From Blastocladiella emersonii ATCC 22665 (taxonomy: Eukaryota > Fungi > Blastocladiomycota), in NCBI GenBank assembly GCA_025594325.1, contig JANHCV010000016.1:1-64000 (forward strand): a stretch of DNA of 64,000 nt, written 5' to 3'. Position 1 is the stretch's first letter. Every line of letters begins with the position of its first letter. Of the stretch, positions 20,118 through 49,243 are shown one piece after another. The notes beneath the pieces were generated by a model. The model was not told the origin of the DNA. It worked only from the letters and a program-made list of their open reading frames with translations, and made no database searches. Position numbers and translations under genes: made by a program.

Positions 20118-21695
20118 TGCAAAGAAGCTGATAATGGTTGGGAGCAGAGGTCCCTGTTGGGAGGCAAGAGAGAGCGTGAGGTCAGCCAGCTGTGACGCAG
20201 CGAGGGCGCCGGCCCTCGGCGAAGGAAAGTGATACGACGGACCATGTGACCTGATTCAATGACCAAAACGCGTTCAAGGCCGCTTCCAAACTCGCACCCC
20301 CTCCCTTGAACCCTTATCCCATGAACTCTCAATGCAACTCCATGCAAAACGGTCTATACAGCTTGGCTCAATCGGGGCCGGTCGATGGCAGGCAGGAACC
20401 CTACCTTTGTCATGCGGGACAGGTTACTCGACTGTGCTGCGGCGATGACCCTTCCCGCACAAGCACCACATCCTGTCGTCAGTCTAACAAATTCGGACTC
20501 TGCAGTTGGATTACTGAGATGCGCGAGTCTTGGAGCTTGCCCAAGTCAGCATGGGCCTCGTGTCGTGCTCATAGTGCGCTCAGACGCTCTCTATCTATAC
20601 CAAAGAGACTCCCTTTCTTCGTGCACCGAGTCCGGTAACCACGGCCTCGCCCTCGCGCGCAAGGCATAACCGCTCAACTGACCGCTTGCTGTGAGGCTAG
20701 TCGCCCCGCGGCCCGCTCTCGCTCTTGCTCTGTCGAAAGTTTTCCGGGGTCACTTTTCTCGCGCTCTGGCTTTTACTGTGGTGCTCTGCGCTGAGCTGGT
20801 TTACTCGGAAAGATGACGCGAAAATGCCTTAGTTGCTTTGTGCGCGCGCCTGGAAAGTGGCCGATGACACCATATGAGCTCTGGCACATCTTTCGTTGCG
20901 GTTACGATAACCCTACGTTGCTACTTTACGTCTGGCCCAGTCTGATCTATAGCGGAAGCTCGACGCGAGGGATGCCTGCGCGGTCCGTACGCGCTAGCGC
21001 GAACCCTCTCCCCTCTCGGCCAACGTTCTGCAGCCGCGAGCGAGGCGTATGTCGGAGACTCCAACAACACGACGCGCACTGGTGAGGTCCGATTGAGCGC
21101 GTGAGAGGACGTGACGCGACGCGACCACTCTTGTCGTCAAGCACGGGTTGGTCCAGCCTTGTGTCGATACGTAGACCGTCGCTTCTTGCGGTGCGGGGCC
21201 AGACGTGAGGAACAGATCATCGCGGCCATTGACAACGACCACGAAACCGAGGAGATTGCCGCGGTGGCCGTCGCGCAGGCGGCTCTCTTATACACCAGCA
21301 CGATCCGTCGGTTGCGCTGGAACCGCTTGAAGCGTGCAAGTCATCGTCGTGGCTCCGGCGGTTCACGACCGCGGCGGTGGCCGTCATCGTGGCCACAAAG
21401 TGACACGGACACGACGCGAGTATGCCTCGACCTCGTCCTCGCGAGGGCTGTGCTATGTATCAGTGGGATTAAACGGCTGGACCCCCCCTCTGAAAGAGCA
21501 TCGTCACGAGCTTGAACAACTGAGTAGCTCGAGCTGATTGTCGGCCGTGGCAATGGCGGCGGCGCGACCGACACGGAGCGCGTGCGAGAGGGCGGGCGAG
21601 GAGTGAAACGCCGGCACGTCGTCGCCCGGAAGACGACACTGCCCAACGGTATATTATGACTCAGGCCGCTGTGACGACCACCACAGTAAAGTGAT

Positions 21696-21767
21696 GGGGC
21701 TGTAGCTCAGTGGTAGAGCGTCTGCTTTGCATGCAGAAGGCCCAGGGTTCAAACCCCTGCTGCTCCA
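21696..21767 (+). tRNA. tRNA-Ala (anticodon TGC), intronless
   Basis: Cloverleaf GGGGCTG-TA-GCTC AGTGGTA GAGC-G-TCTGC TTTGCAT GCAGA-AGGCC-CAGGG TTCAAAC CCCTG-CTGCTCC-A; G3:U70 alanine identity pair; one T-T mismatch in the acceptor stem. Confidence 0.93.
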
Positions 21768-21771
21768 TTTT
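21768..21771 (+). terminator. Pol III oligo-T terminator of tRNA-Ala
   Basis: TTTT directly after the discriminator base, with a second TTTT 3 nt downstream. Confidence 0.6.
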
Positions 21772-22700
21772 AGCTTTTGCACCTGCTCAACCTGCTCAAC
21801 GAGCCTCGTTTGCCATTGACGTCGGCGCAAGGAAGGCGCAGAGAGACCAAGGAGGTTGAGCTGTCACGTCACAGACCCACGTCGACCTCATTCACCGACC
21901 ACACCCGCGCTGAGCGAAGGCGCACTCTACTCGCTCTACTCTGCCCTGTCGTGTGAAACGGTGAAGAAGCGCGGGACGACCCCGAGCACATGTGCGTGTG
22001 CCGAAGCGGGCGGGAAGAAGATGGAGGATGTATCGCTGCCCGCGGGCACGGTTTGACTAGCAGCGTGAGTGGCGCGGCCTCACGCAGCGCTCTTCCTTCG
22101 CCTCCTGGCTCCAACTTCGAGTGGATTGGCTGCCAGCGTGCTACCTGATCGAAGACCGCACTCATTTGCTGTTCTTGGGCGTTTTTATGTCTACTGCGTC
22201 GCGACAAGCGGAAGAACTGGCGCGTCGCGTCGTAGCAAACGCATCTGATCCGAGCATTGATCGTCGCCCCGTTTGCAACTGCCAGTCCTGATTCTCCCCC
22301 CGCCGTCAATCATCTGAACTTCTCACTTACCTGTAAGTCTTACAGGCAAACCGTGTGTATTCGATCGGTCGCTTGAGCGCGTGCGCTGGTTCACCGAGCC
22401 GTGAGAAGCGACACGTCGGGTCGCCTCGCAGCCGCTCCGTTCTGATCCTCGCTGTGATGCTAGCTCTCCTCCGCTCGAGCCCCGGCTCCTATTCCCCATC
22501 CTGCAACTAACTAAACAGCTTACTGAGTTTTGGATGATCTCAACTGAGGAGGGAGGTGAGGCGAGTCAAGAGATGAATAAGTGACTAGGGAGAATGCTAT
22601 TGTGCGATTACATATGAGGGAGAGAAAACATTACAGGTTCAGGATCGAGCTGCGCGCGCGGGCGCGGAATGCCGAAGCCGAACACGCTGGGCAAAGGTGT

Positions 22701-23498
22701 TTAGCAGCAGCCGTTGTTGATGGGCAGGATCGTGACAACGTCGCTGCCGCAGTCGCCGTGGTTGTTGATGGGCATGATGTGGAAGTCGCCGCCGTTGCCG
22801 CAGTCGCCCGAGGGACCCCAGGTGGCCGGGTTGCCGCCGACGAAACCGTCGGCCGAGTGGTGGCCCTGGAACTGCGACTGCGACTGCGTCTGCGACTGCG
22901 ACTGGAACGCGTCGCCGTGGCCGGTCGACCACTGGCCCTGCGACTGCGACTGGTGCTGCACGGCCGAGCCGTGGTCGCCGCCCCACTGGGTCTGCGACTG
23001 CGACTGCGACTGCTGCTGAGCGGCGCCGCCGTGGCCGGCACCCCACTGCGACTGCTGCTGCGCCTGCGACTGGTCGACCGAGCAGTGGTTGCCCCAGCTG
23101 CTCCAGTCGTTGCTGCCCTGGAACTGCGACTGCGACTGCGACTGCGACTGGGCGGCGTCACCATGCGACCACTGCGACTGCGACTGCGACTGCGACTGAG
23201 CGCCGTGGCCGCCGTTGCCCCACTGGGCCTGCGACTGCGACTGCTGCTGAGCGCTCGTGCTGCCGTGGCCGAACTGCATCTGCGACTGCGACTGGGCCTG
23301 GTCGACGGAGCAGTGGTTGCCCCAGTTGCCCTGGAACTGGCTCTGCGACTGCGACTGCGCGGCATCGCCACCGTGCGACCACTGCGACTGGCTCTGCGAC
23401 TGCGACTGGGCGCCGTGGCCGCTGCCCCACTGGGTCTGCGACTGCGACTGCGACTGCTGCTGGACGGCGGGGACGTGGATCGGGGCGCAGAAGGTCAT
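22701..23498 (-). CDS. (Gln-Ser)n repeat protein, copy 1 (265 aa, intronless, prion/amyloid-like)
   Basis: Open frame MTFCAPIHVPAVQQQSQSQ...PINNGCC with strong C/G-ending codon use and an upstream TATA box; identical to the copy at 29834-30631. Confidence 0.85.
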   Translation of the reverse strand: MTFCAPIHVPAVQQQSQSQSQTQWGSGHGAQSQSQSQSQWSHGGDAAQSQSQSQFQGNWGNHCSVDQAQSQSQMQFGHGSTSAQQQSQSQAQWGNGGHGAQSQSQSQSQWSHGDAAQSQSQSQSQFQGSNDWSSWGNHCSVDQSQAQQQSQWGAGHGGAAQQQSQSQSQTQWGGDHGSAVQHQSQSQGQWSTGHGDAFQSQSQTQSQSQFQGHHSADGFVGGNPATWGPSGDCGNGGDFHIMPINNHGDCGSDVVTILPINNGCC

Positions 23499-23588
23499 CT
23501 TGGTGTGTTGGTGGGTCGGTGCGACGGCTCGAGTGTGAGTGGTGGGTGATCTTCTCAACTCGAAGTGGGGCCGAGGGGGCTGTCCCTC

Positions 23589-23594
23589 TTTATA
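23589..23594 (-). promoter_or_regulatory. TATA box of QS-repeat gene copy 1
   Basis: TATAAA about 90 nt upstream of the ATG in an otherwise GC-rich context. Confidence 0.7.
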
Positions 23595-24564
23595 CTCGGA
23601 TCCGCTCGCGCTCGCGTTCTCGCGCTCTCACCGCTCACCAAGACGCGCGCATGCTATTCCCGAGAAATACGCAAGAGCAACGGAAAAACCGGCAGGCGCA
23701 GCGTTGAACGACGCGTCGCTATACGTGGCGACGGCATCGTCAAACCGCCGGCCGCTACGCCGCGACACGTTTCAAAGCGTCTTCGCTGCGTTGCCGTCGC
23801 GCTCTCACCGCTCCCCGCACTCCTCGCACTTCAGACGCATATCAACCGTTCGTGGGAGATCGCTCACGCGTTGGGGGTAGGCAGGCAGGTCGGATTGCAG
23901 CGGCCGGCGGTTCGTGCGTGTGTCGTAAATTCGGAGCGGGTGCGCTTTTGCCGCGGCTACGAAGTCCTCTTGTCGTGGGACGCTCGGTAGAGGCACATGA
24001 ACGTGTGAATGGTTGAGTGCAAGTGGCCGCGAAAAGTGTCCCGCGCCAGTTGTCTCGCGGCCTGGGTCGCGTTGCGCCACACCCCACGTGATTGTTTGAC
24101 GCGTCCTTTGGCGATCCACGGGCGCTCGGTTGCCACTGAGGGGAACCGAGCAGGGCCGTGTAACAGCGGATTTGTGCACTGTAATCACCTCGGTGCGCGT
24201 GTTGAGTCGGCAAGCCGGTTCACGCGCGATGCAGAGATATTCGAATGGCGTGCTCCCTCTGCGCCGCGAGAAGTTGCTCGGACGTTGGTCAGGTTCGCAC
24301 TACAAAGCTCTTGCCTCTACGTTTTTATTCGGTGAAGCTGCCTCAAAGGCGGGTGTAAAGGCGATGACAGGGGAGTTCTGCCGGTCCTTTGTCAGCGCGT
24401 GCGCTCAAAGAGGGCCCCGATCGCGATCACACGGGGCAGCGGAAACCGTTTGCTCGCGCTCAGATTTCGATCGGCGGGACTTCGCCCTCGCAGAACCCCT
24501 GCCCTCAGCAGCGCGCTCCTCCTTTTCTCTCTCTCCACGCCCTCCATCACCACAACCGATTGCA

Positions 24565-26467
24565 ATGAATACAGCAAGCGAGTATCTCGCCGTCGCATCC
24601 AGCGCGGTCGCGCCGCTCAAGGCGCAGGCGGCCGATCTGCTCGGCCCGCTCGTCAACATCCTCGGCCCGCGCAAGTCTGTGCTCCTGGTCGCGCTCTCGA
24701 CGGTCGCCGTCCTCTGCGCGCGGTTCTGGTATCACAGCATCCGCGTGCCGCCGAGCCTGCGTCATGTGCCGCGGCTCACCGTGTGGCAGACGATCCGCGT
24801 CATGACGTCGGGCGCGGGCTTCCTCGACTCGGTCGACCAGCAGCTGCGCATCGTGCGCACCGACGCGCTCAAGCGCGGCGTCATCCAGCACGCGAGCGAG
24901 ACGCCCAAGATCTGGCTGATCTGGTTGTATGTGTACTTGACGCGTTCTCTGTCTTTGACGCGGCCTCACGTTCGTTCGATCCATCCGTAGCCTCGGCAGC
25001 TGGGCCGTCGTGATTGCCAACCCGGCCGACATCAAGTCGCTGCTGCTCGGCCACGAGGTGTTTGACAAGTTCGAGATGACGCGCATGGGCCTGCAGGCGA
25101 CCGCCGACTTCATGGGCACGAACCTCGCGCTCGCCAATGTACGCGCGCTGGTGCTGCTACTCTCCTCGTGCACTTCACTGACGATCTCTCTCATGGTAGA
25201 CGGCCGGGTGGAAGCGCCAGCGCAAGGTTGTGAGCCCCATCTTCCGCCGCAGCTGGGCCACGTCGCTGTTCAGCGAGCCGACGCGCATCCTGCTCGGCAA
25301 GTTCGACGCGATCGCGGATGCCAAGGACGCGACCGTCGACGTGCCCGAGTGGATGATGCGCATCACGCTCGACGCGCTGTGCTCGTCTGCGTTCGGGACC
25401 AACATCGACTCGCTCAACCACCCCGACTCGCCCATTGTGCGCTCGTACATTGCCGCCATGGAGGGCATGTTCAACCCCAAGTTCACGATCCTCGCGCCCG
25501 TCGCGTGGGTCATGCCCGAGTACTGGGCCTACAAGCGCGCCGTTGACGAGTTCAACCGCTACGTGTACCAGATGATTGACGCCAAGGCCGACGAGATTGC
25601 CAAGCGCGCCGGCAGCATCAGCAGCAATGCGGGCGACGACAGCGACGAGAACAACGTCAAGGACCTGCTCGAGACCATGATCATCGCGGGCCAGTCGGGC
25701 GGCTTCTCGCGCGAGGACCTGCGCGCCAACACGGTCGCCTTCTTTGTCGCGGTACGCTCGTTCGTCGCTCTCGTTTCACGAGCTGCGAATACTGACGCTG
25801 CGCTCGCGAATGTGCACAGGGTCACGACACGACGGCCAACGCGCTCACGTTCGCGCTGTACCTGCTCGGGATGCACCCCGAGATCCAGCGCAAGGCGCGC
25901 GCTGAGGTGCTCGCCGTCATGGGCGACGTGGAACAGGGCACGCCCGCCGAGGACTTCCCGTACCCGACCAACGACGAGCAGCAACGGATGTCGTACGTGA
26001 CCTACGTGATCAAGGAGACGATGCGGTTGTACCCGAGCGTGGGCAACCTCCCGCCACGCATCTTGACCAGCCCCGCGATCCTATCCGATGGGTCGCGCGT
26101 TCCCGCGGGCACCATCGTGAGTGGCAACACGATCGCGATCCACCGCGACTGCGCGCAGTGGGGCGACGACGCGGACGAGTTCAAGCCCGAGCGGTGGGCC
26201 GACCTCGGGGTGGGCGCTGACGGCGCGATCCCGATGCACCCGAGTGCGCACGACTTCAAGTGGGTCCCGTTCGGCGGCGGGCAGCGCATCTGCCCTGGCC
26301 AGTCGTTTTCGATCATCGAGCAGCGCGTGGTCCTGTCGATGCTGCTGCTGCGCTACGAGTGGACGGTCGCCGGGAACAAGGCCGCGCTCGCGGGCAGGCC
26401 CGGGTCGGTGCCTGGCGTGATGCTGCGCGCCAAGGGGATCGAGCTCGCGCTCAAGCGGCGCAACTGA
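24565..26467 (+). CDS. Cytochrome P450 (CYP-A), 4 exons
   Basis: N-terminal membrane anchor, I-helix FFVA|GHDTTAN, ETMR, PERW, heme motif PFGGGQRICPG. Confidence 0.93.
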
Positions 26468-26712
26468 TTTGTGCGTTCGCTCGTAGTAACGGCGCAGATA
26501 TATATACGCATAGTTCATCCCTTGTTTGGCATACACAGTGGCAGCACTCCTGGTTGGAGTAGCTCCGCCGTCACGGCGGGCTGCTCCTGACGCGTCGATC
26601 ATCTCCACGTGGCGTCATTCTCCGCGTGGCGATCCGCCCGAGCTGACCAACGAGCTGAGCAACGCGCGCTCACGGCGCTCTCTCTATCAAGGCTGTCCAG
26701 CAAACTACCGCA

Positions 26713-28607
26713 ATGACAAGCACCATCAATGTACTCGATGCAATGAGCAAGGCCATCGCGCCTCTTCGCGTCGAAACGCGCCTCGCCCCGCTCGCGCGAC
26801 TCGTCAAGGCACTCGGCCCGCGCAAATCGGTGCTCCTCGCTGCCCTCGCGACGGCGGCCATGCTCGCGGCGCGCGTGTGGTGGAAGGTGGTCCGCGTCCC
26901 GCCGCACCTCCGCCATCTGCCGCGCGTGTCCTTCTTGCAGACCGTCCGGCTCCTGCTCTCGGGCGAGGGCTTCCTCACCTCGCGGCCCGCCTTCCTCAAG
27001 CTGCTGTGCGAGGACGCGCTCCGCCGCGGCGCCATCACGTCGCCCGCACAGACTCCGCGCGTCTGGCTCGAGTGGATGTACGTGCCCGCAGCGATTAATC
27101 CCGTGTCGCCGCCACTCACGCCGTCGCAACGCATACTGCAGGTTCGGCTTCTGGACCGTCGTCGTGGCCAACCCCGAAGACGCGAAGCTCATGCTCAACG
27201 CGCACGAGCAGTTTGAGAAGATGGACACGTCGAAGCGACGCAACGCCGTGCTCCGCGCCTTTCTGGGCAAGAACATTGTGTCGACTCGGGTACGTTACTT
27301 TGACAACTCTTGCGAGCCTATCGCTCACCTGTTTCGCTGATGAGGTAGACACCAGAGTGGAAGCAGCAGCGCAAGGTCATCAACCCGGCGTTCCGCCGCG
27401 GCTGGGCCACCTCTGTGTTCGGCACGCCCGCGCGCTCGCTCCTCGCGCAGCTCGACCAGCTCGAGACCAAGGCTGAGGCCGTCGACGTCTCGGACTGGAC
27501 GCGACGCGTCACGCTCGACGCGCTGTCCCAGGCCGCGTTTGGCACCAACTTCAACTCGATTGAGCAGCCCGATGCGCCCATGGTGAGGACCTACCACGCC
27601 GTCATGTCGAGCCTCATGGACCCTACCTTTTTCCTGCTCGGCCCCTTCAGCGTCCTCTTGCCGAAATACCACCGCTTCGCCCGCACGGTCGACGACTTCA
27701 ACGCGTTCATATACGCCCTGATCGACGCCAAGGCCGCCAAAATGGCCGAGCGCCGCGAGGGCACGGCCGTCGCCGAGGCGCCCGAGGACGACGCCAAGGA
27801 CCTGCTCGAGCTCATGATCGCGGCCAGCGAATCCGGGGCCGGCGGGTTCACGCGCGATGAGCTGCGCACTAACACGATCGTGTTCTTCATCGCGGCACGT
27901 GTTTCCCTGTACGACGGGGATTCTCCACCATGTAACTGACGGAACTGACTCGCTCGCTGTAGGGCCACGATACGACGGCCAACACGCTCGCGTTCGCGCT
28001 CTACTCGCTCGGCATGCACCCGGAAATCCAGCGCAAGGCGCGCGCCGAGATTCTCAACAACATGGTCGACGCGAGCGAGGGCACCGCGGCGCGCGATTTC
28101 CCGGTTCCGACCAACAACGAGCAAAATCTGGCGTACCTCACGGCCGTCATCAAGGAGACCATGCGCCTGTACCCGAGCGTGCCCGCCATTGGCATGCGCG
28201 AGCTAGTCGCGCCTTCCTCTCTTTCTGGCGGTCTCCGCCTGCCCGTGGACACCATGGTCGCGCTGGACGTGCACGCGCTGCAGACGGCGCGCGAGTACTG
28301 GGGCCACGACGCGGTGCAGTTCAAGCCCGAGCGCTGGCTTGATTCTGACGCCAAGGAGAAGGTCATGGTCATGAACCCAAGCGCGCACGACTTCAAGTGG
28401 ATCCCGTTCGGCGGCGGGCAGCGCATCTGCCTCGGCCAGCAGTTCTCGATCATCGAGCAGCGCGTCATCCTGTCCATGCTCCTCCTGCGCTACGAGTGGA
28501 CCGTCGTCGGCGACAAGGCCGCGCTCGCCGGCTGCCCCAACTCGTCTCCCAGCAGCGGGTTTCTGCAGGCCAAGGACGTTCGGATCAAGCTGACCCGTCG
28601 CAACTGA
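26713..28607 (+). CDS. Cytochrome P450 (CYP-B), 4 exons; third intron needs a GC donor
   Basis: FFIA|GHDTTAN, ETMR, PERW, PFGGGQRICLG; intron 27895-27962 begins GCACGT. Confidence 0.88.
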
Positions 28608-29737
28608 TCATTCCGTTTGACAGCAGGAACAATGTACCATTCTCGTTCTACTGCTTGTTTTCGACTTTCCCGACTCAATTGTCGATGGATGTGGCACGCG
28701 GCAAACAATCACCGTTTCATGCGGTGCAACGCGACTTTGATTGTGGGTGGGATGGTTGTTGAGACACCGAGCCCAGGCCCCTCGGAATTGGCTGCCTTCC
28801 ATGCGAATACGCGGGTACGCCGTTGGACGAACCCAAACCACCGTCATACATTATTCGTAGTTGTGCCGGTATTCAAGCGAACCTGAATCTGTTCGGTCGC
28901 GTGCCAGCAAGGATCAAACCTTGCGGATGAAATGCGTCGCCTCGCGCATAGTTATATCGCAGAATATCAGTTGTCTTACTATTTCTAACACCTCCGGTTT
29001 CTCTTAGAATCACCCAGAATGGATCAATGCTCAGCTATCTGCCCAGGTGAGCGGTGATGGGCGAGTCTCGGGGCAAAGGAACGCGCGCGGCGTCACGATC
29101 AACGTTTGCATCAGAAGCGAAAGCCTACGAGAATAATCAAGTGGGTTCCGATTAGTACAAGCACGCTGTTACACGGCCCTGCTAGGTTCCCCTCAGTGGC
29201 AACCGAGCGCCCGTGGATCGCCAAAGGACGCGTCAAACAATCACGTGGGGTGTGGCGCAACGCGACCCAGGCCGCGAGACAACTGGCGCGGGACACTTTT
29301 CGCGGCCACTTGCACTCAACCATTCACACGTTCATGTGCCTCTACCGAGCGTCCCACGACAAGAGGACTTCGTAGCCGCGGCAAAAGCGCACCCGCTCCG
29401 AATTTACGACACACGCACGAACCGCCGGCCGCTGCAATCCGACCTGCCTGCCTACCCCCAACGCGTGAGCGATCTCCCACGAACGGTTGATATGCGTCTG
29501 AAGTGCGAGGAGTGCGGGGAGCGGTGAGAGCGCGACGGCAACGCAGCGAAGACGCTTTGAAACGTGTCGCGGCGTAGCGGCCGGCGGTTTGACGATGCCG
29601 TCGCCACGTATAGCGACGCGTCGTTCAACGCTGCGCCTGCCGGTTTTTCCGTTGCTCTTGCGTATTTCTCGGGAATAGCATGCGCGCGTCTTGGTGAGCG
29701 GTGAGAGCGCGAGAACGCGAGCGCGAGCGGATCCGAG

Positions 29738-29743
29738 TATAAA
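29738..29743 (+). promoter_or_regulatory. TATA box of QS-repeat gene copy 2
   Basis: TATAAA about 90 nt upstream of ATG 29834. Confidence 0.7.
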
Positions 29744-29833
29744 GAGGGACAGCCCCCTCGGCCCCACTTCGAGTTGAGAAGATCACCCACCACTCACACT
29801 CGAGCCGTCGCACCGACCCACCAACACACCAAG

Positions 29834-30631
29834 ATGACCTTCTGCGCCCCGATCCACGTCCCCGCCGTCCAGCAGCAGTCGCAGTCGCAGTCGCAGACCC
29901 AGTGGGGCAGCGGCCACGGCGCCCAGTCGCAGTCGCAGAGCCAGTCGCAGTGGTCGCACGGTGGCGATGCCGCGCAGTCGCAGTCGCAGAGCCAGTTCCA
30001 GGGCAACTGGGGCAACCACTGCTCCGTCGACCAGGCCCAGTCGCAGTCGCAGATGCAGTTCGGCCACGGCAGCACGAGCGCTCAGCAGCAGTCGCAGTCG
30101 CAGGCCCAGTGGGGCAACGGCGGCCACGGCGCTCAGTCGCAGTCGCAGTCGCAGTCGCAGTGGTCGCATGGTGACGCCGCCCAGTCGCAGTCGCAGTCGC
30201 AGTCGCAGTTCCAGGGCAGCAACGACTGGAGCAGCTGGGGCAACCACTGCTCGGTCGACCAGTCGCAGGCGCAGCAGCAGTCGCAGTGGGGTGCCGGCCA
30301 CGGCGGCGCCGCTCAGCAGCAGTCGCAGTCGCAGTCGCAGACCCAGTGGGGCGGCGACCACGGCTCGGCCGTGCAGCACCAGTCGCAGTCGCAGGGCCAG
30401 TGGTCGACCGGCCACGGCGACGCGTTCCAGTCGCAGTCGCAGACGCAGTCGCAGTCGCAGTTCCAGGGCCACCACTCGGCCGACGGTTTCGTCGGCGGCA
30501 ACCCGGCCACCTGGGGTCCCTCGGGCGACTGCGGCAACGGCGGCGACTTCCACATCATGCCCATCAACAACCACGGCGACTGCGGCAGCGACGTTGTCAC
30601 GATCCTGCCCATCAACAACGGCTGCTGCTAA
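29834..30631 (+). CDS. (Gln-Ser)n repeat protein, copy 2 (265 aa)
   Basis: Same translation as 22701-23498; TAA at 30629-30631. Confidence 0.85.
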   Translation: MTFCAPIHVPAVQQQSQSQSQTQWGSGHGAQSQSQSQSQWSHGGDAAQSQSQSQFQGNWGNHCSVDQAQSQSQMQFGHGSTSAQQQSQSQAQWGNGGHGAQSQSQSQSQWSHGDAAQSQSQSQSQFQGSNDWSSWGNHCSVDQSQAQQQSQWGAGHGGAAQQQSQSQSQTQWGGDHGSAVQHQSQSQGQWSTGHGDAFQSQSQTQSQSQFQGHHSADGFVGGNPATWGPSGDCGNGGDFHIMPINNHGDCGSDVVTILPINNGCC

Positions 30632-31564
30632 ACACCTTTGCCCAGCGTGTTCGGCTTCGGCATTCCGCGCCCGCGCGCGCAGCTCGATCCTGAACCTGTA
30701 ATGTTTTCTCTCCCTCATATGTAATCGCACAATAGCATTCTCCCTAGTCACTTATTCATCTCTTGACTCGCCTCACCTCCCTCCTCAGTTGAGATCATCC
30801 AAAACTCAGTAAGCTGTTTAGTTAGTTGCAGGATGGGGAATAGGAGCCGGGGCTCGAGCGGAGGAGAGCTAGCATCACAGCGAGGATCAGAACGGAGCGG
30901 CTGCGAGGCGACCCGACGTGTCGCTTCTCACGGCTCGGTGAACCAGCGCACGCGCTCAAGCGACCGATCGAATACACACGGTTTGCCTGTAAGACTTACA
31001 GGTAAGTGAGAAGTTCAGATGATTGACGGCGGGGGGAGAATCAGGACTGGCAGTTGCAAACGGGGCGACGATCAATGCTCGGATCAGATGCGTTTGCTAC
31101 GACGCGACGCGCCAGTTCTTCCGCTTGTCGCGACGCAGTAGACATAAAAACGCCCAAGAACAGCAAATGAGTGCGGTCTTCGATCAGGTAGCACGCTGGC
31201 AGCCAATCCACTCGAAGTTGGAGCCAGGAGGCGAAGGAAGAGCGCTGCGTGAGGCCGCGCCACTCACGCTGCTAGTCAAACCGTGCCCGCGGGCAGCGAT
31301 ACATCCTCCATCTTCTTCCCGCCCGCTTCGGCACACGCACATGTGCTCGGGGTCGTCCCGCGCTTCTTCACCGTTTCACACGACAGGGCAGAGTAGAGCG
31401 AGTAGAGTGCGCCTTCGCTCAGCGCGGGTGTGGTCGGTGAATGAGGTCGACGTGGGTCTGTGACGTGACAGCTCAACCTCCTTGGTCTCTCTGCGCCTTC
31501 CTTGCGCCGACGTCAATGGCAAACGAGGCTCGTTGAGCAGGTTGAGCAGGTGCAAAAGCTAAAA

Positions 31565-31636
31565 TGGAGCAGCAGGGGTTTGAACCCTGGGCCTTCTGCA
31601 TGCAAAGCAGACGCTCTACCACTGAGCTACAGCCCC
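31565..31636 (-). tRNA. tRNA-Ala (TGC), second copy
   Basis: Mirror copy of 21696-21767. Confidence 0.93.
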
Positions 31637-32917
31637 ATCACTTTACTGTGGTGGTCGTCACAGCGGCCTGAGTCATAATATACCGTTGGGCAGTGTCGTC
31701 TTCCGGGCGACGACGTGCCGGCGTTTCACTCCTCGCCCGCCCTCTCGCACGCGCTCCGTGTCGGTCGCGCCGCCGCCATTGCCACGGCCGACAATCAGCT
31801 CGAGCTACTCAGTTGTTCAAGCTCGTGACGATGCTCTTTCAGAGGGGGGGTCCAGCCGTTTAATCCCACTGATACATAGCACAGCCCTCGCGAGGACGAG
31901 GTCGAGGCATACTCGCGTCGTGTCCGTGTCACTTTGTGGCCACGATGACGGCCACCGCCGCGGTCGTGAACCGCCGGAGCCACGACGATGACTTGCACGC
32001 TTCAAGCGGTTCCAGCGCAACCGACGGATCGTGCTGGTGTATAAGAGAGCCGCCTGCGCGACGGCCACCGCGGCAATCTCCTCGGTTTCGTGGTCGTTGT
32101 CAATGGCCGCGATGATCTGTTCCTCACGTCTGGCCCCGCACCGCAAGAAGCGACGGTCTACGTATCGACACAAGGCTGGACCAACCCGTGCTTGACGACA
32201 AGAGTGGTCGCGTCGCGTCACGTCCTCTCACGCGCTCAATCGGACCTCACCAGTGCGCGTCGTGTTGTTGGAGTCTCCGACATACGCCTCGCTCGCGGCT
32301 GCAGAACGTTGGCCGAGAGGGGAGAGGGTTCGCGCTAGCGCGTACGGACCGCGCAGGCATCCCTCGCGTCGAGCTTCCGCTATAGATCAGACTGGGCCAG
32401 ACGTAAAGTAGCAACGTAGGGTTATCGTAACCGCAACGAAAGATGTGCCAGAGCTCATATGGTGTCATCGGCCACTTTCCAGGCGCGCGCACAAAGCAAC
32501 TAAGGCATTTTCGCGTCATCTTTCCGAGTAAACCAGCTCAGCGCAGAGCACCACAGTAAAAGCCAGAGCGCGAGAAAAGTGACCCCGGAAAACTTTCGAC
32601 AGAGCAAGAGCGAGAGCGGGTCTCCGGGGAACCGGCGCGGTTTTGAGCTTCCGAAGCGAATTGGCGCGGTCAGCTGGGATCAGCTGACCAGTTGTCTCAC
32701 TGTCTCACACGCGCGCGGCGCGTCGCATCGACGCGTTTTTCGCGCCGACGCGAGGGTTTGGGGGGCAATGTCTCGCCACTGAATGAACGCGTCAATGGGG
32801 CGCGCGTTGGGATACAGCGCCCGCGACGCGTCCTCGCTCTCCTCGCGCACTCCACCTTTGCAACGGACCGAGCAGTACTCTTACGATATCAACCCGTCCA
32901 CCCGACGCACCACACCT

Positions 32918-45478: not shown

Positions 45479-47327
45479 ATGGATCCATCCGCCGTCCTCG
45501 CATCCGTAACAACCGCCCTCGCGCCGCTGCAGCTCGAGACGCGGCTCGCCCCGCTGCTCACCCTTGTTCGCGTCCTCGGCCCGCGCAAGTCGGCCCTCCT
45601 CACAGCGCTGGCCACGGCCACGGTGCTTGGTGCGCGGTTCTGGTACCGCAGCATCCGCGTGCCGCCGGGCCTGCGGCACCTGCCGCGGCTCTCGATCGCG
45701 CAGACGTTCACGGTGCTCACGTCGGGCGCCGGGTTCTTTGACGCGTTCGACGCGCAGATCAAGCTCGTGCGCGCTGACGCGCTCCGGCGCGGCGTGATTC
45801 GCAGCGACAAGGAGACGCCGAAACACTGGGCGTTCTGGTTGTATGTATCGGTCGGCTGCTGGCATTACTGGCGTGGCGCGTACTGACAGGTTCGCGTGTG
45901 CGTTCGCGTAGCCTCGGGAAGTGGAGCGTGGTGACGGCCAACCCCGAGGACATGAAGCAGGTATTCACGGGACACGAGCAGTTCGAGAAGTTCGACTTCA
46001 GCGGCCTGACGCTTTCGGCGACGCGTGACTTCCTCGGCGACAACGTTGCCCTGTCGCAGACGCCCGTGTGGAAGCGGCAGCGCAAGGTCGTCAACCCGGC
46101 GTTCCGGCGCGGGTGGGCCACGTCCATCTTCGGTCCGCCCGCGCGCGTCCTGCTCTCCGAGCTCGACAAGCTCGAGGCGCAGCGCACGCCCGTCGACGTC
46201 GCCGATTACATGCAGCGCATGACGCTCGACGCGCTGTAGCAGGCGGCGTTTGGGACCAACTTCAACGCGCTCGAGAACCCGCACTCGGATATGGCGACCA
46301 GCTACCACACGGCCATGGCCGGGCTCGCCAACCTCAAGCTGGTCATGCTGTGGCCGTTCTCCCTGTTCATGTCCGACTATTGGGCGTACAAGCGCGCCGT
46401 CGCCAAGTTCAACACGTACATCTACCAACTGATCGACGCCAAGGCGGCCGAGGTCGCCAAGCGTCGCGGGAACACGGCGGCGGCGGCAGCGGGTGCGGGC
46501 GAGGACGTTGACGACGCCAAGGACCTCCTCGAGCTCATGGTCGCGGCGGGCGAGTCGGGCGGGTTCTCGCGCGAGGAGCTGCGCGCCAACGTCGTCATCT
46601 TCTTCATTGCCGTACGTTCATCGTTCATCGCCTGCATCATTTAAGCTCGTGTCTAACTCTGCCGTCTCGCATCTAGGGCCACGACACGACGGCCAACGCG
46701 CTGACGTTCGTGCTGTACGTGCTCGGCCGCAACCCGGAAATCCAGCGCAAGGCGCGCGCCGAGGTGCTCGCCCTCATAGGCGACGCGGACCAGGGCACGG
46801 CCGCCGCTGACTTCCCGTACCCGACCAACGACGCGCAGAACCGCATGTCGTACCTGACGTGCGTCATCAAGGAGACGATGCGCCTGTTCCCGAGCGTGTG
46901 CGTGCTGCCAATGCGCGAGGTCAGCACGGACGGGAAACTCGGCGGCGGGTCGCTCGAGGTGCCCGCGGGGACCACGGTCAGCGCGCACATCTACGCGGTG
47001 CACCACGCGCGCGAGTACTGGGGCGACGACGCGGACGCGTTCCGTCCCGAGCGGTGGGCCGACCTGGGGGTGAGCACCGACGGGGCGATCCCGCTGCACC
47101 CGGGCGAGCACGACTTCAAGTGGGTCCCGTTTGGCGGCGGGCAGCGGATCTGCCTCGGGCAGCAGTTCTCTATCATCGAGCAGCGCGTCATCCTGTCCAT
47201 GCTCCTCCTGCGCTACGAGTGGACCGTCGCGGGCAACGACGCGGCGCTTGCGGGTCGCCCCGACGTTAGTCCCGGCACGCTGCTCCACGGCAAGGACATT
47301 TTCCTCGACCTCAAGCGTCGAAACTGA
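45479..47327 (+). pseudogene. Cytochrome P450 (CYP-C) with an in-frame premature TAG
   Basis: All P450 motifs present, but ...MTLDAL-TAG(46237-46239)-QAAFGTNF, where CYP-B reads VTLDAL-S-QAAFGTNF; the frame continues after the stop. Confidence 0.75.
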
Positions 47328-47485
47328 GCCGTGTGTGTGAGAAGAGCTTTGCTTGAACAACGCGTCTTGTGGTGGTGCCTGAAACAGCCACCTCCACCGC
47401 CCCGCACCGCACCGTCCGACGTCAAAACGGGCCTCGCTCCATCGCACCACGCTCTCTCTCCTCCAGCTCGCACCCTTGCACAACC

Positions 47486-49243
47486 ATGAATCTTGACATC
47501 TTAGCACACGTCCCTCCGCGGATCACCTCGCTCGTCGCGCGCCTCGGCGGCGTCCGCGTACTCGCGACCGCCGTCCTGGTCGCGCTTGCCTCCAAGCGCA
47601 TGTGGTCGATCTACACGCGCGTGGTGCGCGTACCGCGCGGGCTCGAGCACCTGCCGCGCGTCGCGCTGCGGCCGACGCTCAAGTTCCTGACGTCGGGCGA
47701 GGGCGCGCTCGCGTGGACGCCAAAGTACATGCGGCTGCTGCGCGAGGACGCGCTGCGCCGCGGCGCGATCAAGAGTATCGAGGAGACGCCGCGCGTTTGG
47801 CTGTTCTGGGAGTACGGATGGCCGCGAGTTGCTTTGGAGCGTATTGGCGACTGACGAGAAAAGTGTGAGTGTAGGGCTGGTCGCTGGAACCTCGTCCTCG
47901 CGAACCCCGACGACGCCAAGCTCACGTTCGCCGACCGCCAGCTGTACGACAAGATCAGTCCCGAGGCCAACCCGGTTGCGGCGTCGCGCGAGCTGCCCGG
48001 CCAGCCGCTGTTCCTCGTCACGGTACGCCTGTCTCAGACCCGGGTGCGCACACCTCGTATCTCACACACCTTGCGCGCACGCTAGTACCACGACTGGAAA
48101 CGCCAGCGCAAGGTTGTGAACCCGGCGTTCCGCCGCGGTTGGTCGACGACACTGTTCGAGGCGCCGACTCGCGCGCTGCTCGCGCAGCTCGACAAGCTTG
48201 AAGCCGCGGGCAAGCCCGTTGTCGTCGACGACTGGATGCAGCGCGTGACTCTGGACGCGCTGACGCAGGTCGCGCTCGGGACCTCGTTCCGTACGATCGA
48301 GGACCCGTCGGGCCGCATGCTGTCCATCTACCACCGCGTCATCGCGGGCGTCATGTCGCCCAAGTTCGTGATCCTCGCGCCCGTCGCGCGGATGTTTGCC
48401 GGGTTCCGCGACTACGCGCGCGCCGTCAAGGAGATGAACGCGTATTTGCTCGAGGTGATCGACGCCAAGGTCACGGAAATGCAGCGCAAGAAGGTGCTCG
48501 CCAGCGCCGAATCCGTGAGCGATGATGATGGCCGCGACTCGCGCGACCTGCTCGAGCTCATGATCGAGGCGAGCGAGGACGGGACCTTCACGCGCGAGGA
48601 GCTGCGGAGCAACCTGTTCACCTTCATTCTCGCGGGCCACGACACCACGTCGACGGCGCTGACGTTCGCCATCTACCTGCTCGGCATGCACCCGGAGATC
48701 CAGGCGCGCGCGCGGGCCGAGGTCCTGTCGGTGCTCCCGTCGCCCAACGCATGCCCGACGACCGAGGCGCAGGCCAAGCTCGTGTACCTGACGCGCGTGA
48801 TTAAGGAGACGATGCGACTGTACCCGAGCGTGGCCGTGAGCACGGCGCGGATCACGACCGCGCCCGCGGTGCTGTCGGACGGCCTCGCGGTGCCCAAGGG
48901 CACGCCCGTCCTGCTGCACACGCGCGCGATGCAGACGGCGCGCGAGTATTGGGGCGATACGGCTGACGTGTTCGACCCGGACCGCTGGGCTGACTACAAC
49001 CTCGCGATGACGGCCAGCGCTAACGGGAACAAGTGGGCGCCGTTCGGCGGCGGCCAGCGCGCGTGTATCGGCGCCGGGTTCTCGATCGTCGAGCAGCGCG
49101 TCGTGCTCGCCATGATGCTCGCGCGGTACGAGTGGCGCGTCGTTAGGGACGCGGAGGCCGTGGCGGGCCGCCCTCAGTCGACGGCCAGCTTTCGGTTCCT
49201 GCACGCGGTTGGGATCGAGATCGAGCTCAAGCATCGCCAGTAA
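47486..49243 (+). CDS. Cytochrome P450 (CYP-D), 3 exons
   Basis: FILAGHDTTST (no intron here), ETMR, PDRW, PFGGGQRACIG. Confidence 0.92.

Follow-up and report, generated by a model that had tools for sequence, protein, structure and literature searches.

A gene-bearing palindrome in Blastocladiella emersonii, probably an old duplication with arms kept identical by gene conversion

The X and Y chromosomes of primates carry gene-bearing palindromes whose arms are kept alike by arm-to-arm gene conversion, and gene-bearing palindromes on the sex chromosomes of willow and poplar are reportedly maintained in the same way. Inverted repeats are also formed in yeast by fold-back and origin-dependent inverted-repeat amplification, the products usually being inverted triplications or terminal duplications under selection. 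In Candida albicans, long inverted repeats mediate inversions, CNV and LOH (Todd et al. 2019, PMC6591007). Inversions between these repeats have been demonstrated, and the term "gene conversion" is absent from the main text of that paper (PMC6591007).

Here we describe a palindrome of 11.9 kb built around two P450 genes in Blastocladiella emersonii ATCC 22665, as defined by repeat search and base-by-base comparison. The window analyzed comprises 64,000 nucleotides at the start of contig C8 of the PacBio HiFi assembly. Like the sex-chromosome palindromes, this one has long inverted arms, a unique spacer and an arm identity (>99.9%) far higher than the age of the structure would suggest; its arms also contain multi-copy genes, and there is evidence of concerted evolution. 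Palindromes in B. emersonii measure kilobases rather than the tens of kilobases to megabases seen on sex chromosomes, and are spread over ordinary chromosomes instead of being confined to a non-recombining one. They also show still greater uniformity inside the arms (about 2 mismatches in the 54 kb sampled), and, unlike in the sex-chromosome cases, paralogous palindromes resemble each other more closely in their spacers and coding cores than in their arms. The gene content of the window arms, one tRNA and one orphan gene for a repeat protein, differs as well.

The C. albicans repeats resemble the palindrome in being fungal, ORF-containing, highly identical substrates of recombination of 0.1–6.5 kb (PMC6591007). 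However, their median identity is about 94–98% and copies lie up to 1.6 Mb apart, so they are not tight, near-100% palindromes (PMC6591007). Unlike yeast amplification products, the B. emersonii structure has only two copies, is interstitial and is old, and decay and conversion have left no trace of the junctions at which it was founded. An inverted duplication of this type, whose unique centre is short, would most likely arise from a template switch at short inverted repeats during replication or repair.

Layout of the palindrome and its genes

The left arm (20712–24168, forward strand) is 3457 bp long and is the reverse complement of the right arm (29164–32620, reverse strand). Between them lies a unique spacer of 4995 bp (24169–29163, forward strand) with the tandem genes CYP-A and CYP-B inside. 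Base-by-base comparison of the arms gave an identity of 3456/3457 and reproduced exactly the coordinates, arm length and spacer length proposed in an initial annotation made from the letters of the window. The sole mismatch, which that annotation had placed near the inner end, is at 24148 (mirror position 29184), 20 bp from the inner edge; the left arm has G, the mirror reads T when reverse-complemented, and the left-arm state is that of the left arm of a sister palindrome described below. A 3.4-kb inverted repeat cannot be due to chance. Sharp outer ends had also been claimed, and sensitive blastn detected no inverted homology beyond them.

All four junctions of the palindrome, at the outer flanks and the spacer edges, are in single-copy DNA. 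No further full copy of the window arm is present in the genome; elsewhere, arm sequence recurs only as tRNA genes and as paralogues of the QS gene. GC content is 0.62 in the arms versus 0.66–0.70 in the flanks, and since the window arms are not GC-enriched there is no sign of GC-biased conversion. A subtelomeric origin was considered, as the window begins the contig, but no AAACCT telomere repeat was found in the window.

Each arm carries a tRNA-Ala(UGC) gene, at 21695–21768 on the forward strand and 31564–31637 on the reverse strand. Both were called by ARAGORN and matched Rfam RF00005 (70.9 bits for the left copy), and elsewhere in the genome the closest tRNA-Ala-like gene has 88% identity. 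The second arm gene, QS, encodes a Gln-Ser-repeat protein. Its left copy (22701–23498, reverse strand) is an intact ORF of 265 aa plus stop that reads away from the spacer, and its right copy (29834–30631, forward strand; 265 aa) is the mirror image. A TATAAA box at 23589–23594 (reverse strand), ∼91 bp upstream of the left QS ATG, is mirrored in the right arm and is kept in both arms of the sister palindrome. The initial annotation had likewise placed a tRNA-Ala and a complete, TATA-driven QS gene in each arm. QS paralogues retain the same N- and C-termini and have open frames. The homologues found were all hypothetical proteins of B. emersonii, and none turned up outside this species among the 8000 low-complexity candidates scored. 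The remainder of each arm contains no Pfam-recognisable ORF.

The P450 pair reported for the spacer was supported by matches of forward-strand exons to Pfam PF00067, the profile searches being run with single exons rather than joined gene models. CYP-A (24565–26467, forward strand) is intron-bearing, with an approximate start taken as the first ATG before the N-terminal membrane helix and a stop at 26467. It matches profile positions 116–273 and 292–458, the latter with 131 bits and covering the C-terminal heme-binding region. CYP-B (26713–28607, forward strand) is an intron-bearing tandem paralogue with about 66% DNA identity to CYP-A. Direct repeats in the spacer lie 2137–2151 bp apart, and the CYP-B start was placed from this 2.15-kb offset. 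CYP-B matches profile positions 122–274 and 292–438, again covering the heme-binding region (122 bits on 292–438), and its closest solved structures are CYP4, CYP97 and CYP102-type enzymes.

A sister palindrome and remnants of a longer arm

A sister palindrome (C8:94951–102905) lies 73 kb from the window palindrome on the same contig. This permits a comparison of four copies and provides an internal test of gene conversion that needs no second strain. The order tRNA-Ala, QS, P450, QS, tRNA-Ala is common to both loci: each sister arm carries a QS gene and a tRNA-Ala, with anticodon CGC versus UGC in the window, and the sister spacer carries a P450. That entire spacer (C8:97542–100270) is 97% identical to 24353–27091 of the window spacer. 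The sister shares the inner arm and the spacer of the window palindrome but not its outer ends, and the common layout is retained even though non-coding DNA differs by 5–25% between loci.

The sister arms are two-tiered. About 2.14 kb are 100% identical, and the adjoining inner 480 bp are only ∼75% identical, with indels. We considered whether the diverged patches came from a third copy, and rejected this: the inner-tier region has four copies genome-wide, hence no third copy in the assembly can be the donor.

At the window palindrome, sequence just inside each arm also appears to derive from a longer ancestral arm. The stretch inside the right arm (29127–29163, reverse strand) is colinear with the sister arms and not with the left side of the window palindrome; the 37-bp colinear match scored 42, compared to a maximum of 26 in 500 shuffles. 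A weaker signal (15-bp colinear match, p = 0.002) was obtained for the diverged stretch inside the left arm (24169–24380, forward strand), which doubles as the 5' flank of CYP-A, and 24353–24410 matches the inner end of the sister's left arm. Within these remnants the two sides of the window palindrome no longer resemble each other. As both arms run on into separately diverged remnants, neither can be a fresh copy ending at the present edge. Together, the decayed tier and the same layout in a diverged sister indicate that the duplication is older than the arm identity implies.

The two loci differ at 120 fixed sites over 22360–24168. At either locus the two arms are identical to each other, except in the decayed inner tier of the sister, which starts near window position 23914. 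Reading of these fixed sites is complicated by exchange between loci. The two loci, though 73 kb apart, also recombine with each other: window and sister are almost the same in the body of CYP-A and in the coding sequence of QS, while the adjoining non-coding DNA differs by 14–25%.

Where the sister arms differ, the window arm is a mosaic of the two. Over 23914–23997 it agrees with one sister arm at 30 of the 31 substitution sites that distinguish them, and over 24006–24161 with the other at 28 of 30. It is never unlike both, and the sites fall into 7 runs, a number as low in none of 100,000 permutations. However, patchy exchange between loci, which demonstrably occurs, can also produce such a mosaic, so the pattern alone does not prove arm-to-arm conversion in the window.

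Palindromes elsewhere in the genome

We compared nine palindromes in total: those of the window and the sister locus, and seven further sampled inverted pairs. All seven further pairs are near-perfect. In seven of the nine palindromes, nearly all mismatches fall within 33 bp of the edge of an arm, and the arm interiors contain 2 in about 54 kb. Paralogous palindrome loci, by contrast, differ by 2.5–25%.

Contig C15 holds two loci, C15a and C15b, that are duplicates of a whole palindrome and have identical spacers of 1554 bp. Between them, 225 sites are fixed in both arms of each locus, compared to a single arm-specific (arm-orthologous) site. These data demonstrate concerted evolution in the B. 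emersonii genome. Contig C12, 58.8 kb long, has its midpoint as a centre of symmetry. The window palindrome is one of many such structures in this genome.

Origin and maintenance of the arms

We favour the view, with a probability of roughly 0.75, that the palindrome is genuinely chromosomal and goes back to an old inverted duplication, its arms having been kept identical by arm-to-arm gene conversion. The duplication would have set a block of tRNA-Ala and QS on either side of the P450 tandem, and the arms would then have repeatedly overwritten each other by intrachromosomal gene conversion. The outcome would be 3.4 kb of identical sequence, flanked by innermost ends that escaped correction and decayed. 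If so, the inner edge at 24168/29164 marks the end of a conversion tract rather than the original duplication breakpoint. Conversion as the mechanism is inferred from the two-tier structure, the sister locus and the concerted evolution of the C15 pair. A possible benefit would be two error-corrected copies of the tRNA and of a lineage-specific gene. Occasional crossover between the arms would presumably invert the spacer, and by analogy a flip of the P450 cassette is plausible.

Some observations count against this explanation. Apart from the tRNA, whose anticodon differs, nothing in the sister corresponds recognisably to the outer 1.6 kb of the window arms, and in each locus the locus-specific outer sequence is common to both arms, which arm-to-arm conversion of an old duplication leaves unaccounted for.

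The initial annotation had offered gene conversion and a very recent duplication as alternatives, and it is the former that gains from the comparisons above. In the latter, a single inverted duplication would have occurred so recently that the arms have had too little time to diverge, with no later conversion. The 3456/3457 identity fits this scenario, as do the sharp outer ends without decayed homology outside them and the presence of the outer 1.6 kb at the window locus only. Nevertheless, we regard it as unlikely. Beyond their inner edges the two arms pass into colinear remnants of an older, longer arm that have diverged separately, and the sister has the same architecture with a decayed inner tier. 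Moreover, all seven of the other near-perfect palindromes would need to be just as young, yet paralogous palindromes differ by 2.5–25%.

The structure could instead reflect a fold-back, a mis-join or two alleles placed in inverted order during assembly, in which case short-read polishing would have inflated the identity of the arms. In every palindrome sampled the arm interiors are essentially 100% identical, and the symmetry of C12 looks suspicious. The assembly was purged of duplicates and Pilon-polished with 65-bp reads (PMC9730499), and such polishing could have erased a small number of genuine differences between the arms; for copy number and the two pairs of junctions we follow the published assembly. 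Several features make an artefact very improbable, though. The mean HiFi read of 10.5 kb (PMC9730499) is three times as long as the 3.46-kb arms, the four junctions are distinct and single-copy, and there is a real mismatch together with different paralogous continuations at the two inner edges. A fold-back does not yield inner arms that are 25% diverged with indels, as in the sister.

There is little to recommend a composite transposon, a mobile cassette of host genes or a regulated invertible switch acting on the two P450 genes: the layout does recall inverted terminal repeats around cargo genes, and crossover between inverted arms would flip the spacer as in the long inverted repeats of C. 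albicans (PMC6591007), but no arm ORF has a transposase, recombinase or other Pfam domain, and after a flip each P450 gene would still have its own promoter (the arm edge is ∼400 bp upstream of the CYP-A ATG), so that no regulatory effect is evident. Nor do the spacer ORFs contain a Pfam recombinase domain, and kilobase-long arms fit homologous rather than site-specific recombination. The likeness to a composite transposon drawn in the initial annotation, which had itself seen no transposase or TIR-plus-TSD features, is unsupported; we likewise found no transposase, TIR or TSD, there is no direct repeat in the flanking bases, the four palindrome edges are free of Helitrons and other repeats, the flanks and spacer edge are single-copy, and what the one related locus has in common with the window palindrome is the inner arm and the spacer rather than the ends. 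We therefore reject it.

Taken alone, the window holds one more gene-bearing palindrome; with the others, it places self-correcting palindromes, best known from sex chromosomes, on the ordinary chromosomes of an early-diverging fungus that is not known to have a sexual cycle. Beyond arm-to-arm conversion, the comparisons suggest that paralogous palindromes exchange centres. A broader and tentative proposal, which we think possible but doubtful, is that a large share of the multi-copy genes of B. emersonii sit in perfectly homogenised palindromes, with each arm corrected from its neighbour and the partnerless spacers from paralogous palindromes. This division would account for the closer resemblance between loci in spacers and coding cores than in arms, and would amount to a genome-wide, Y-chromosome-like regime of copy correction on ordinary chromosomes. 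The words "palindrome" and "inverted" are absent from the main text of the genome paper (PMC9730499). Inside palindromes we find 18 of the 19 tRNA-Ala-like genes and, for the QS family, 14 of the 17 best copies.

Structure and gene content of the palindrome

The inverted repeat is exactly as the initial annotation had described it. A repeat search of the window first reported the arms as 20704-24175 and 29157-32628, and base-by-base comparison trimmed these to 20712-24168 and 29164-32620, giving arms of 3457 bp each around a spacer of 4995 bp. The exact arm alignment proposed there as a check leaves one mismatch only, at position 24148, 20 bp from the inner edge. The arms show no GC enrichment, and their outer 1.6 kb is locus-specific, yet present in both.

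Each arm was said to carry a tRNA-Ala gene and a complete, TATA-driven gene for a Gln-Ser-repeat protein (QS), and both are present. The tRNA-Ala(UGC) genes lie at 21695-21768 (+ strand, left arm) and 31564-31637 (– strand, right arm). The left QS gene, an intact ORF of 265 aa with many Gln-Ser repeats, runs from 23498 down to 22701 on the – strand and is mirrored by the right copy (29834-30631); a TATAAA box stands ∼91 bp upstream of the ATG. The remaining arm ORFs matched no Pfam family. In the spacer, the P450 gene pair also holds up: CYP-A (∼24565-26467) and CYP-B (∼26713-28607) are intron-bearing cytochrome P450 genes in tandem on the + strand. With exons searched singly, the mid-domain and heme-region exons of both genes matched PF00067, and CYP4, CYP97 and CYP102-type enzymes were the nearest solved relatives. 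A further tandem P450 pair (45573-49206, + strand), 65-86% identical to CYP-A/CYP-B, lies outside any palindrome.

On the evidence of the published assembly, the palindrome is a real structure. That assembly was built from PacBio HiFi reads (mean 10.5 kb) with the La Jolla Assembler and purge_dups, and was polished by Pilon using 65-bp Illumina reads (PMC9730499). A caveat is that a small number of genuine arm-to-arm differences may have been lost in this polishing. Neither 'palindrom' nor 'inverted' occurs in the main text of PMC9730499, and a literature search for Blastocladiella with nuclear palindromes found no paper.

Two-tier arms at the window and sister loci

The window is the first 64 kb of contig C8, and a query with the window arm led to another palindrome further along this contig, at C8:94951-102905, here termed the sister. 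Each of its arms carries a tRNA-Ala gene (anticodon CGC) and a QS gene, with transcription away from the centre, its spacer holds a P450, and the order of parts is common to both palindromes. The sister arms are 100% identical in an outer tier (94951 to ∼97090, 2.14 kb) but only ∼75% identical, with indels, in an inner tier of 480 bp. The genome has only four copies of the inner-tier region, one in each arm of the window and sister palindromes, so a third-copy donor in this assembly is ruled out as the cause of the inner divergence. It follows from these two tiers that inverted duplication of this architecture is old and that part of it was recently made uniform. The sister spacer ends in a ∼380-bp fragment (C8:99890-100270) corresponding to the first exon of CYP-B, and this fragment stops exactly where the right arm begins; therefore, the sister locus lost most of CYP-B, whereas the window right arm lost ∼170 bp of inner arm.

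The window palindrome, judged by its sequence, is two-tiered like the sister. Beyond the edge of identity on the right side, 37 bp (29163 to 29127) are still homologous to, and colinear with, both arms of the sister (first 19 bases identical; score 42, versus at most 26 in 500 shuffles). On the left side, there is a weaker colinear trace of 15 bp (P = 0.002), and homology with the inner end of the sister left arm resumes from 24353. Past the edge, the two window sides have no similarity to each other. Since paralogous continuations past 24168 and 29164 are impossible for a fresh arm copy ending there, the edge marks the end of a homogenised tract in an older, longer inverted duplication. The very recent inverted duplication that the initial annotation offered as an alternative is disfavoured by these separately diverged, sister-like continuations beyond both inner edges. 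The position of the lone mismatch fits a transition zone.

We also compared the window arm with the sister at substitution positions where the sister's two arms differ. In 23914-23997 its base is that of the sister right arm at 30 of 31 sites, and in 24006-24161 it is that of the left arm at 28 of 30; at no such site does it differ from both. This mosaic comprises seven runs, and as few were seen in 0 of 100,000 permutations. Possibly, an already diverged left/right pair was homogenised into the window arms by two or more tracts running in opposite directions; alternatively, the window and sister loci may have swapped patches. The two readings are inseparable because exchange between these loci clearly happens. 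Between window and sister, the CYP-A body (25353-26852) has 0 mismatches in 1500 bp and the QS coding sequence has 8 fixed differences in 744 aligned sites; differences amount to 4.5% in the QS 5' flank, 14% in the CYP-A 5' flank and 25% in the QS 3' flank. The outer arms contain no alignable sequence between the loci except the tRNA. Purifying selection alone is rejected as the cause of this regional contrast, as it cannot give 1% in coding sequence beside 25% in a flank.

Palindromes and the QS and tRNA-Ala families across the genome

The window palindrome is one of many in the B. emersonii genome, and is the same kind of structure as the palindromes best known from sex chromosomes. Besides window and sister, seven of seven inverted pairs sampled are near-perfect palindromes. 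They lie on contigs C1 (arms 2164 bp, spacer 3143 bp), C18 (6949 and 2680 bp), C3 (at least 9853 and 7840 bp), C19 (1573145-1604102; 1640 and 27,678 bp), C12 (8001-50780; at least 18,446 bp with 1 mismatch, and 5888 bp) and C15, which has two: C15a (9015 and 1554 bp) and C15b (at least 12,646 and 1554 bp). Across the window palindrome and six others (C3 left out), nearly every mismatch is no more than 33 bp from an arm edge, with 2 mismatches in ∼54 kb of arm interior. Faint decayed homology lies outside the C1 arms. In C19, the inner arm edge falls within a QS gene, so that one copy is intact and the other truncated; the C19 spacer encloses a further inverted pair, 81% identical (1580716-1581632 and 1583210-1584093). 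Contig C12 (58.8 kb) is symmetric as a whole about its own midpoint, each arm bearing tRNA-Cys, two tRNA-Thr genes and tRNA-Ala(CGC); it represents either a palindrome, free-standing or unplaced, or an artefact of assembly.

Among the matches listed, QS protein homologues were found only among hypothetical proteins of B. emersonii ATCC 22665. These proteins (window 22701-23498 and paralogues; 224-278 aa) share a conserved N-terminus and a conserved Cys-rich C-terminus ending in two Cys residues, with a variable number of Gln-Ser repeats between. Fourteen of the best 17 copies are inside seven palindromes (six divergent, one convergent). Genome-wide, 18/19 tRNA-Ala-like matches fall in mirror-symmetric inverted pairs, with two pairs on C8, one on C12 and three on C3, which also holds a symmetric triple set centred near 661.8 kb; C16:1674300 is the only unpaired match. 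At C11:656176-659250, a QS gene comes after a CYP-B-like P450 (78% identical), which repeats the order and orientation of the window palindrome's right half. The surroundings showed no mirrored QS copy, and this locus may be a non-palindromic form of the unit.

Probable arm-to-arm gene conversion

C15a (C15:972133-991716) and C15b (C15:1152001-1178846) are palindromes copied from one another, 183.5 kb apart, with identical spacers (1554 bp). As these are duplicates of a whole palindrome, the palindrome is older than their split. The initial annotation had suggested comparing strains for SNPs fixed in both arms; with these paralogues replacing strains, a four-way arm alignment gives 225 sites at which a locus has one base in both its arms and the other locus has another in both, versus 1 arm-orthologous site and 1 singleton. 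Arms of one locus are identical to each other. Differences between the loci fall in blocks: ∼10% over the outer 2 kb, zero over a 2.9-kb block, and zero again across the spacer and the 0.9 kb of either arm next to it. On this sequence evidence, the C15 pair shows concerted evolution between palindrome arms in this genome. Together with the two-tier arms of window and sister, it supports the annotation's other proposal, that the window palindrome was homogenised by arm-to-arm gene conversion, to which we assign a probability of roughly three in four.

The likeness to a composite transposon is rejected, because each of the four junctions falls in single-copy DNA (within the 21-contig assembly, the outermost 1 kb is confined to the two arms, and neither the flanks nor the spacer's first 184 bp recur), base-by-base comparison revealed no target-site duplication, and Pfam searches of ORFs in the arms and spacer revealed no transposase or recombinase domain.

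For gene conversion, we infer a mechanism of pairing and repair. Arms would pair within the chromosome, and a break in one arm would be repaired from the other, overwriting differences; repair tracts would rarely extend to the arm edges, which would then decay. A break in the spacer, lacking a local partner, may be repaired from a paralogous palindrome, and this would account for a feature of both palindrome pairs compared: the loci differ less in their centres than in their arms. A crossover between arms would flip the P450 cassette, with no apparent regulatory effect because upstream DNA stays with each P450 gene. The predicted flip resembles the inversions between long inverted repeats observed in Candida albicans (PMC6591007).
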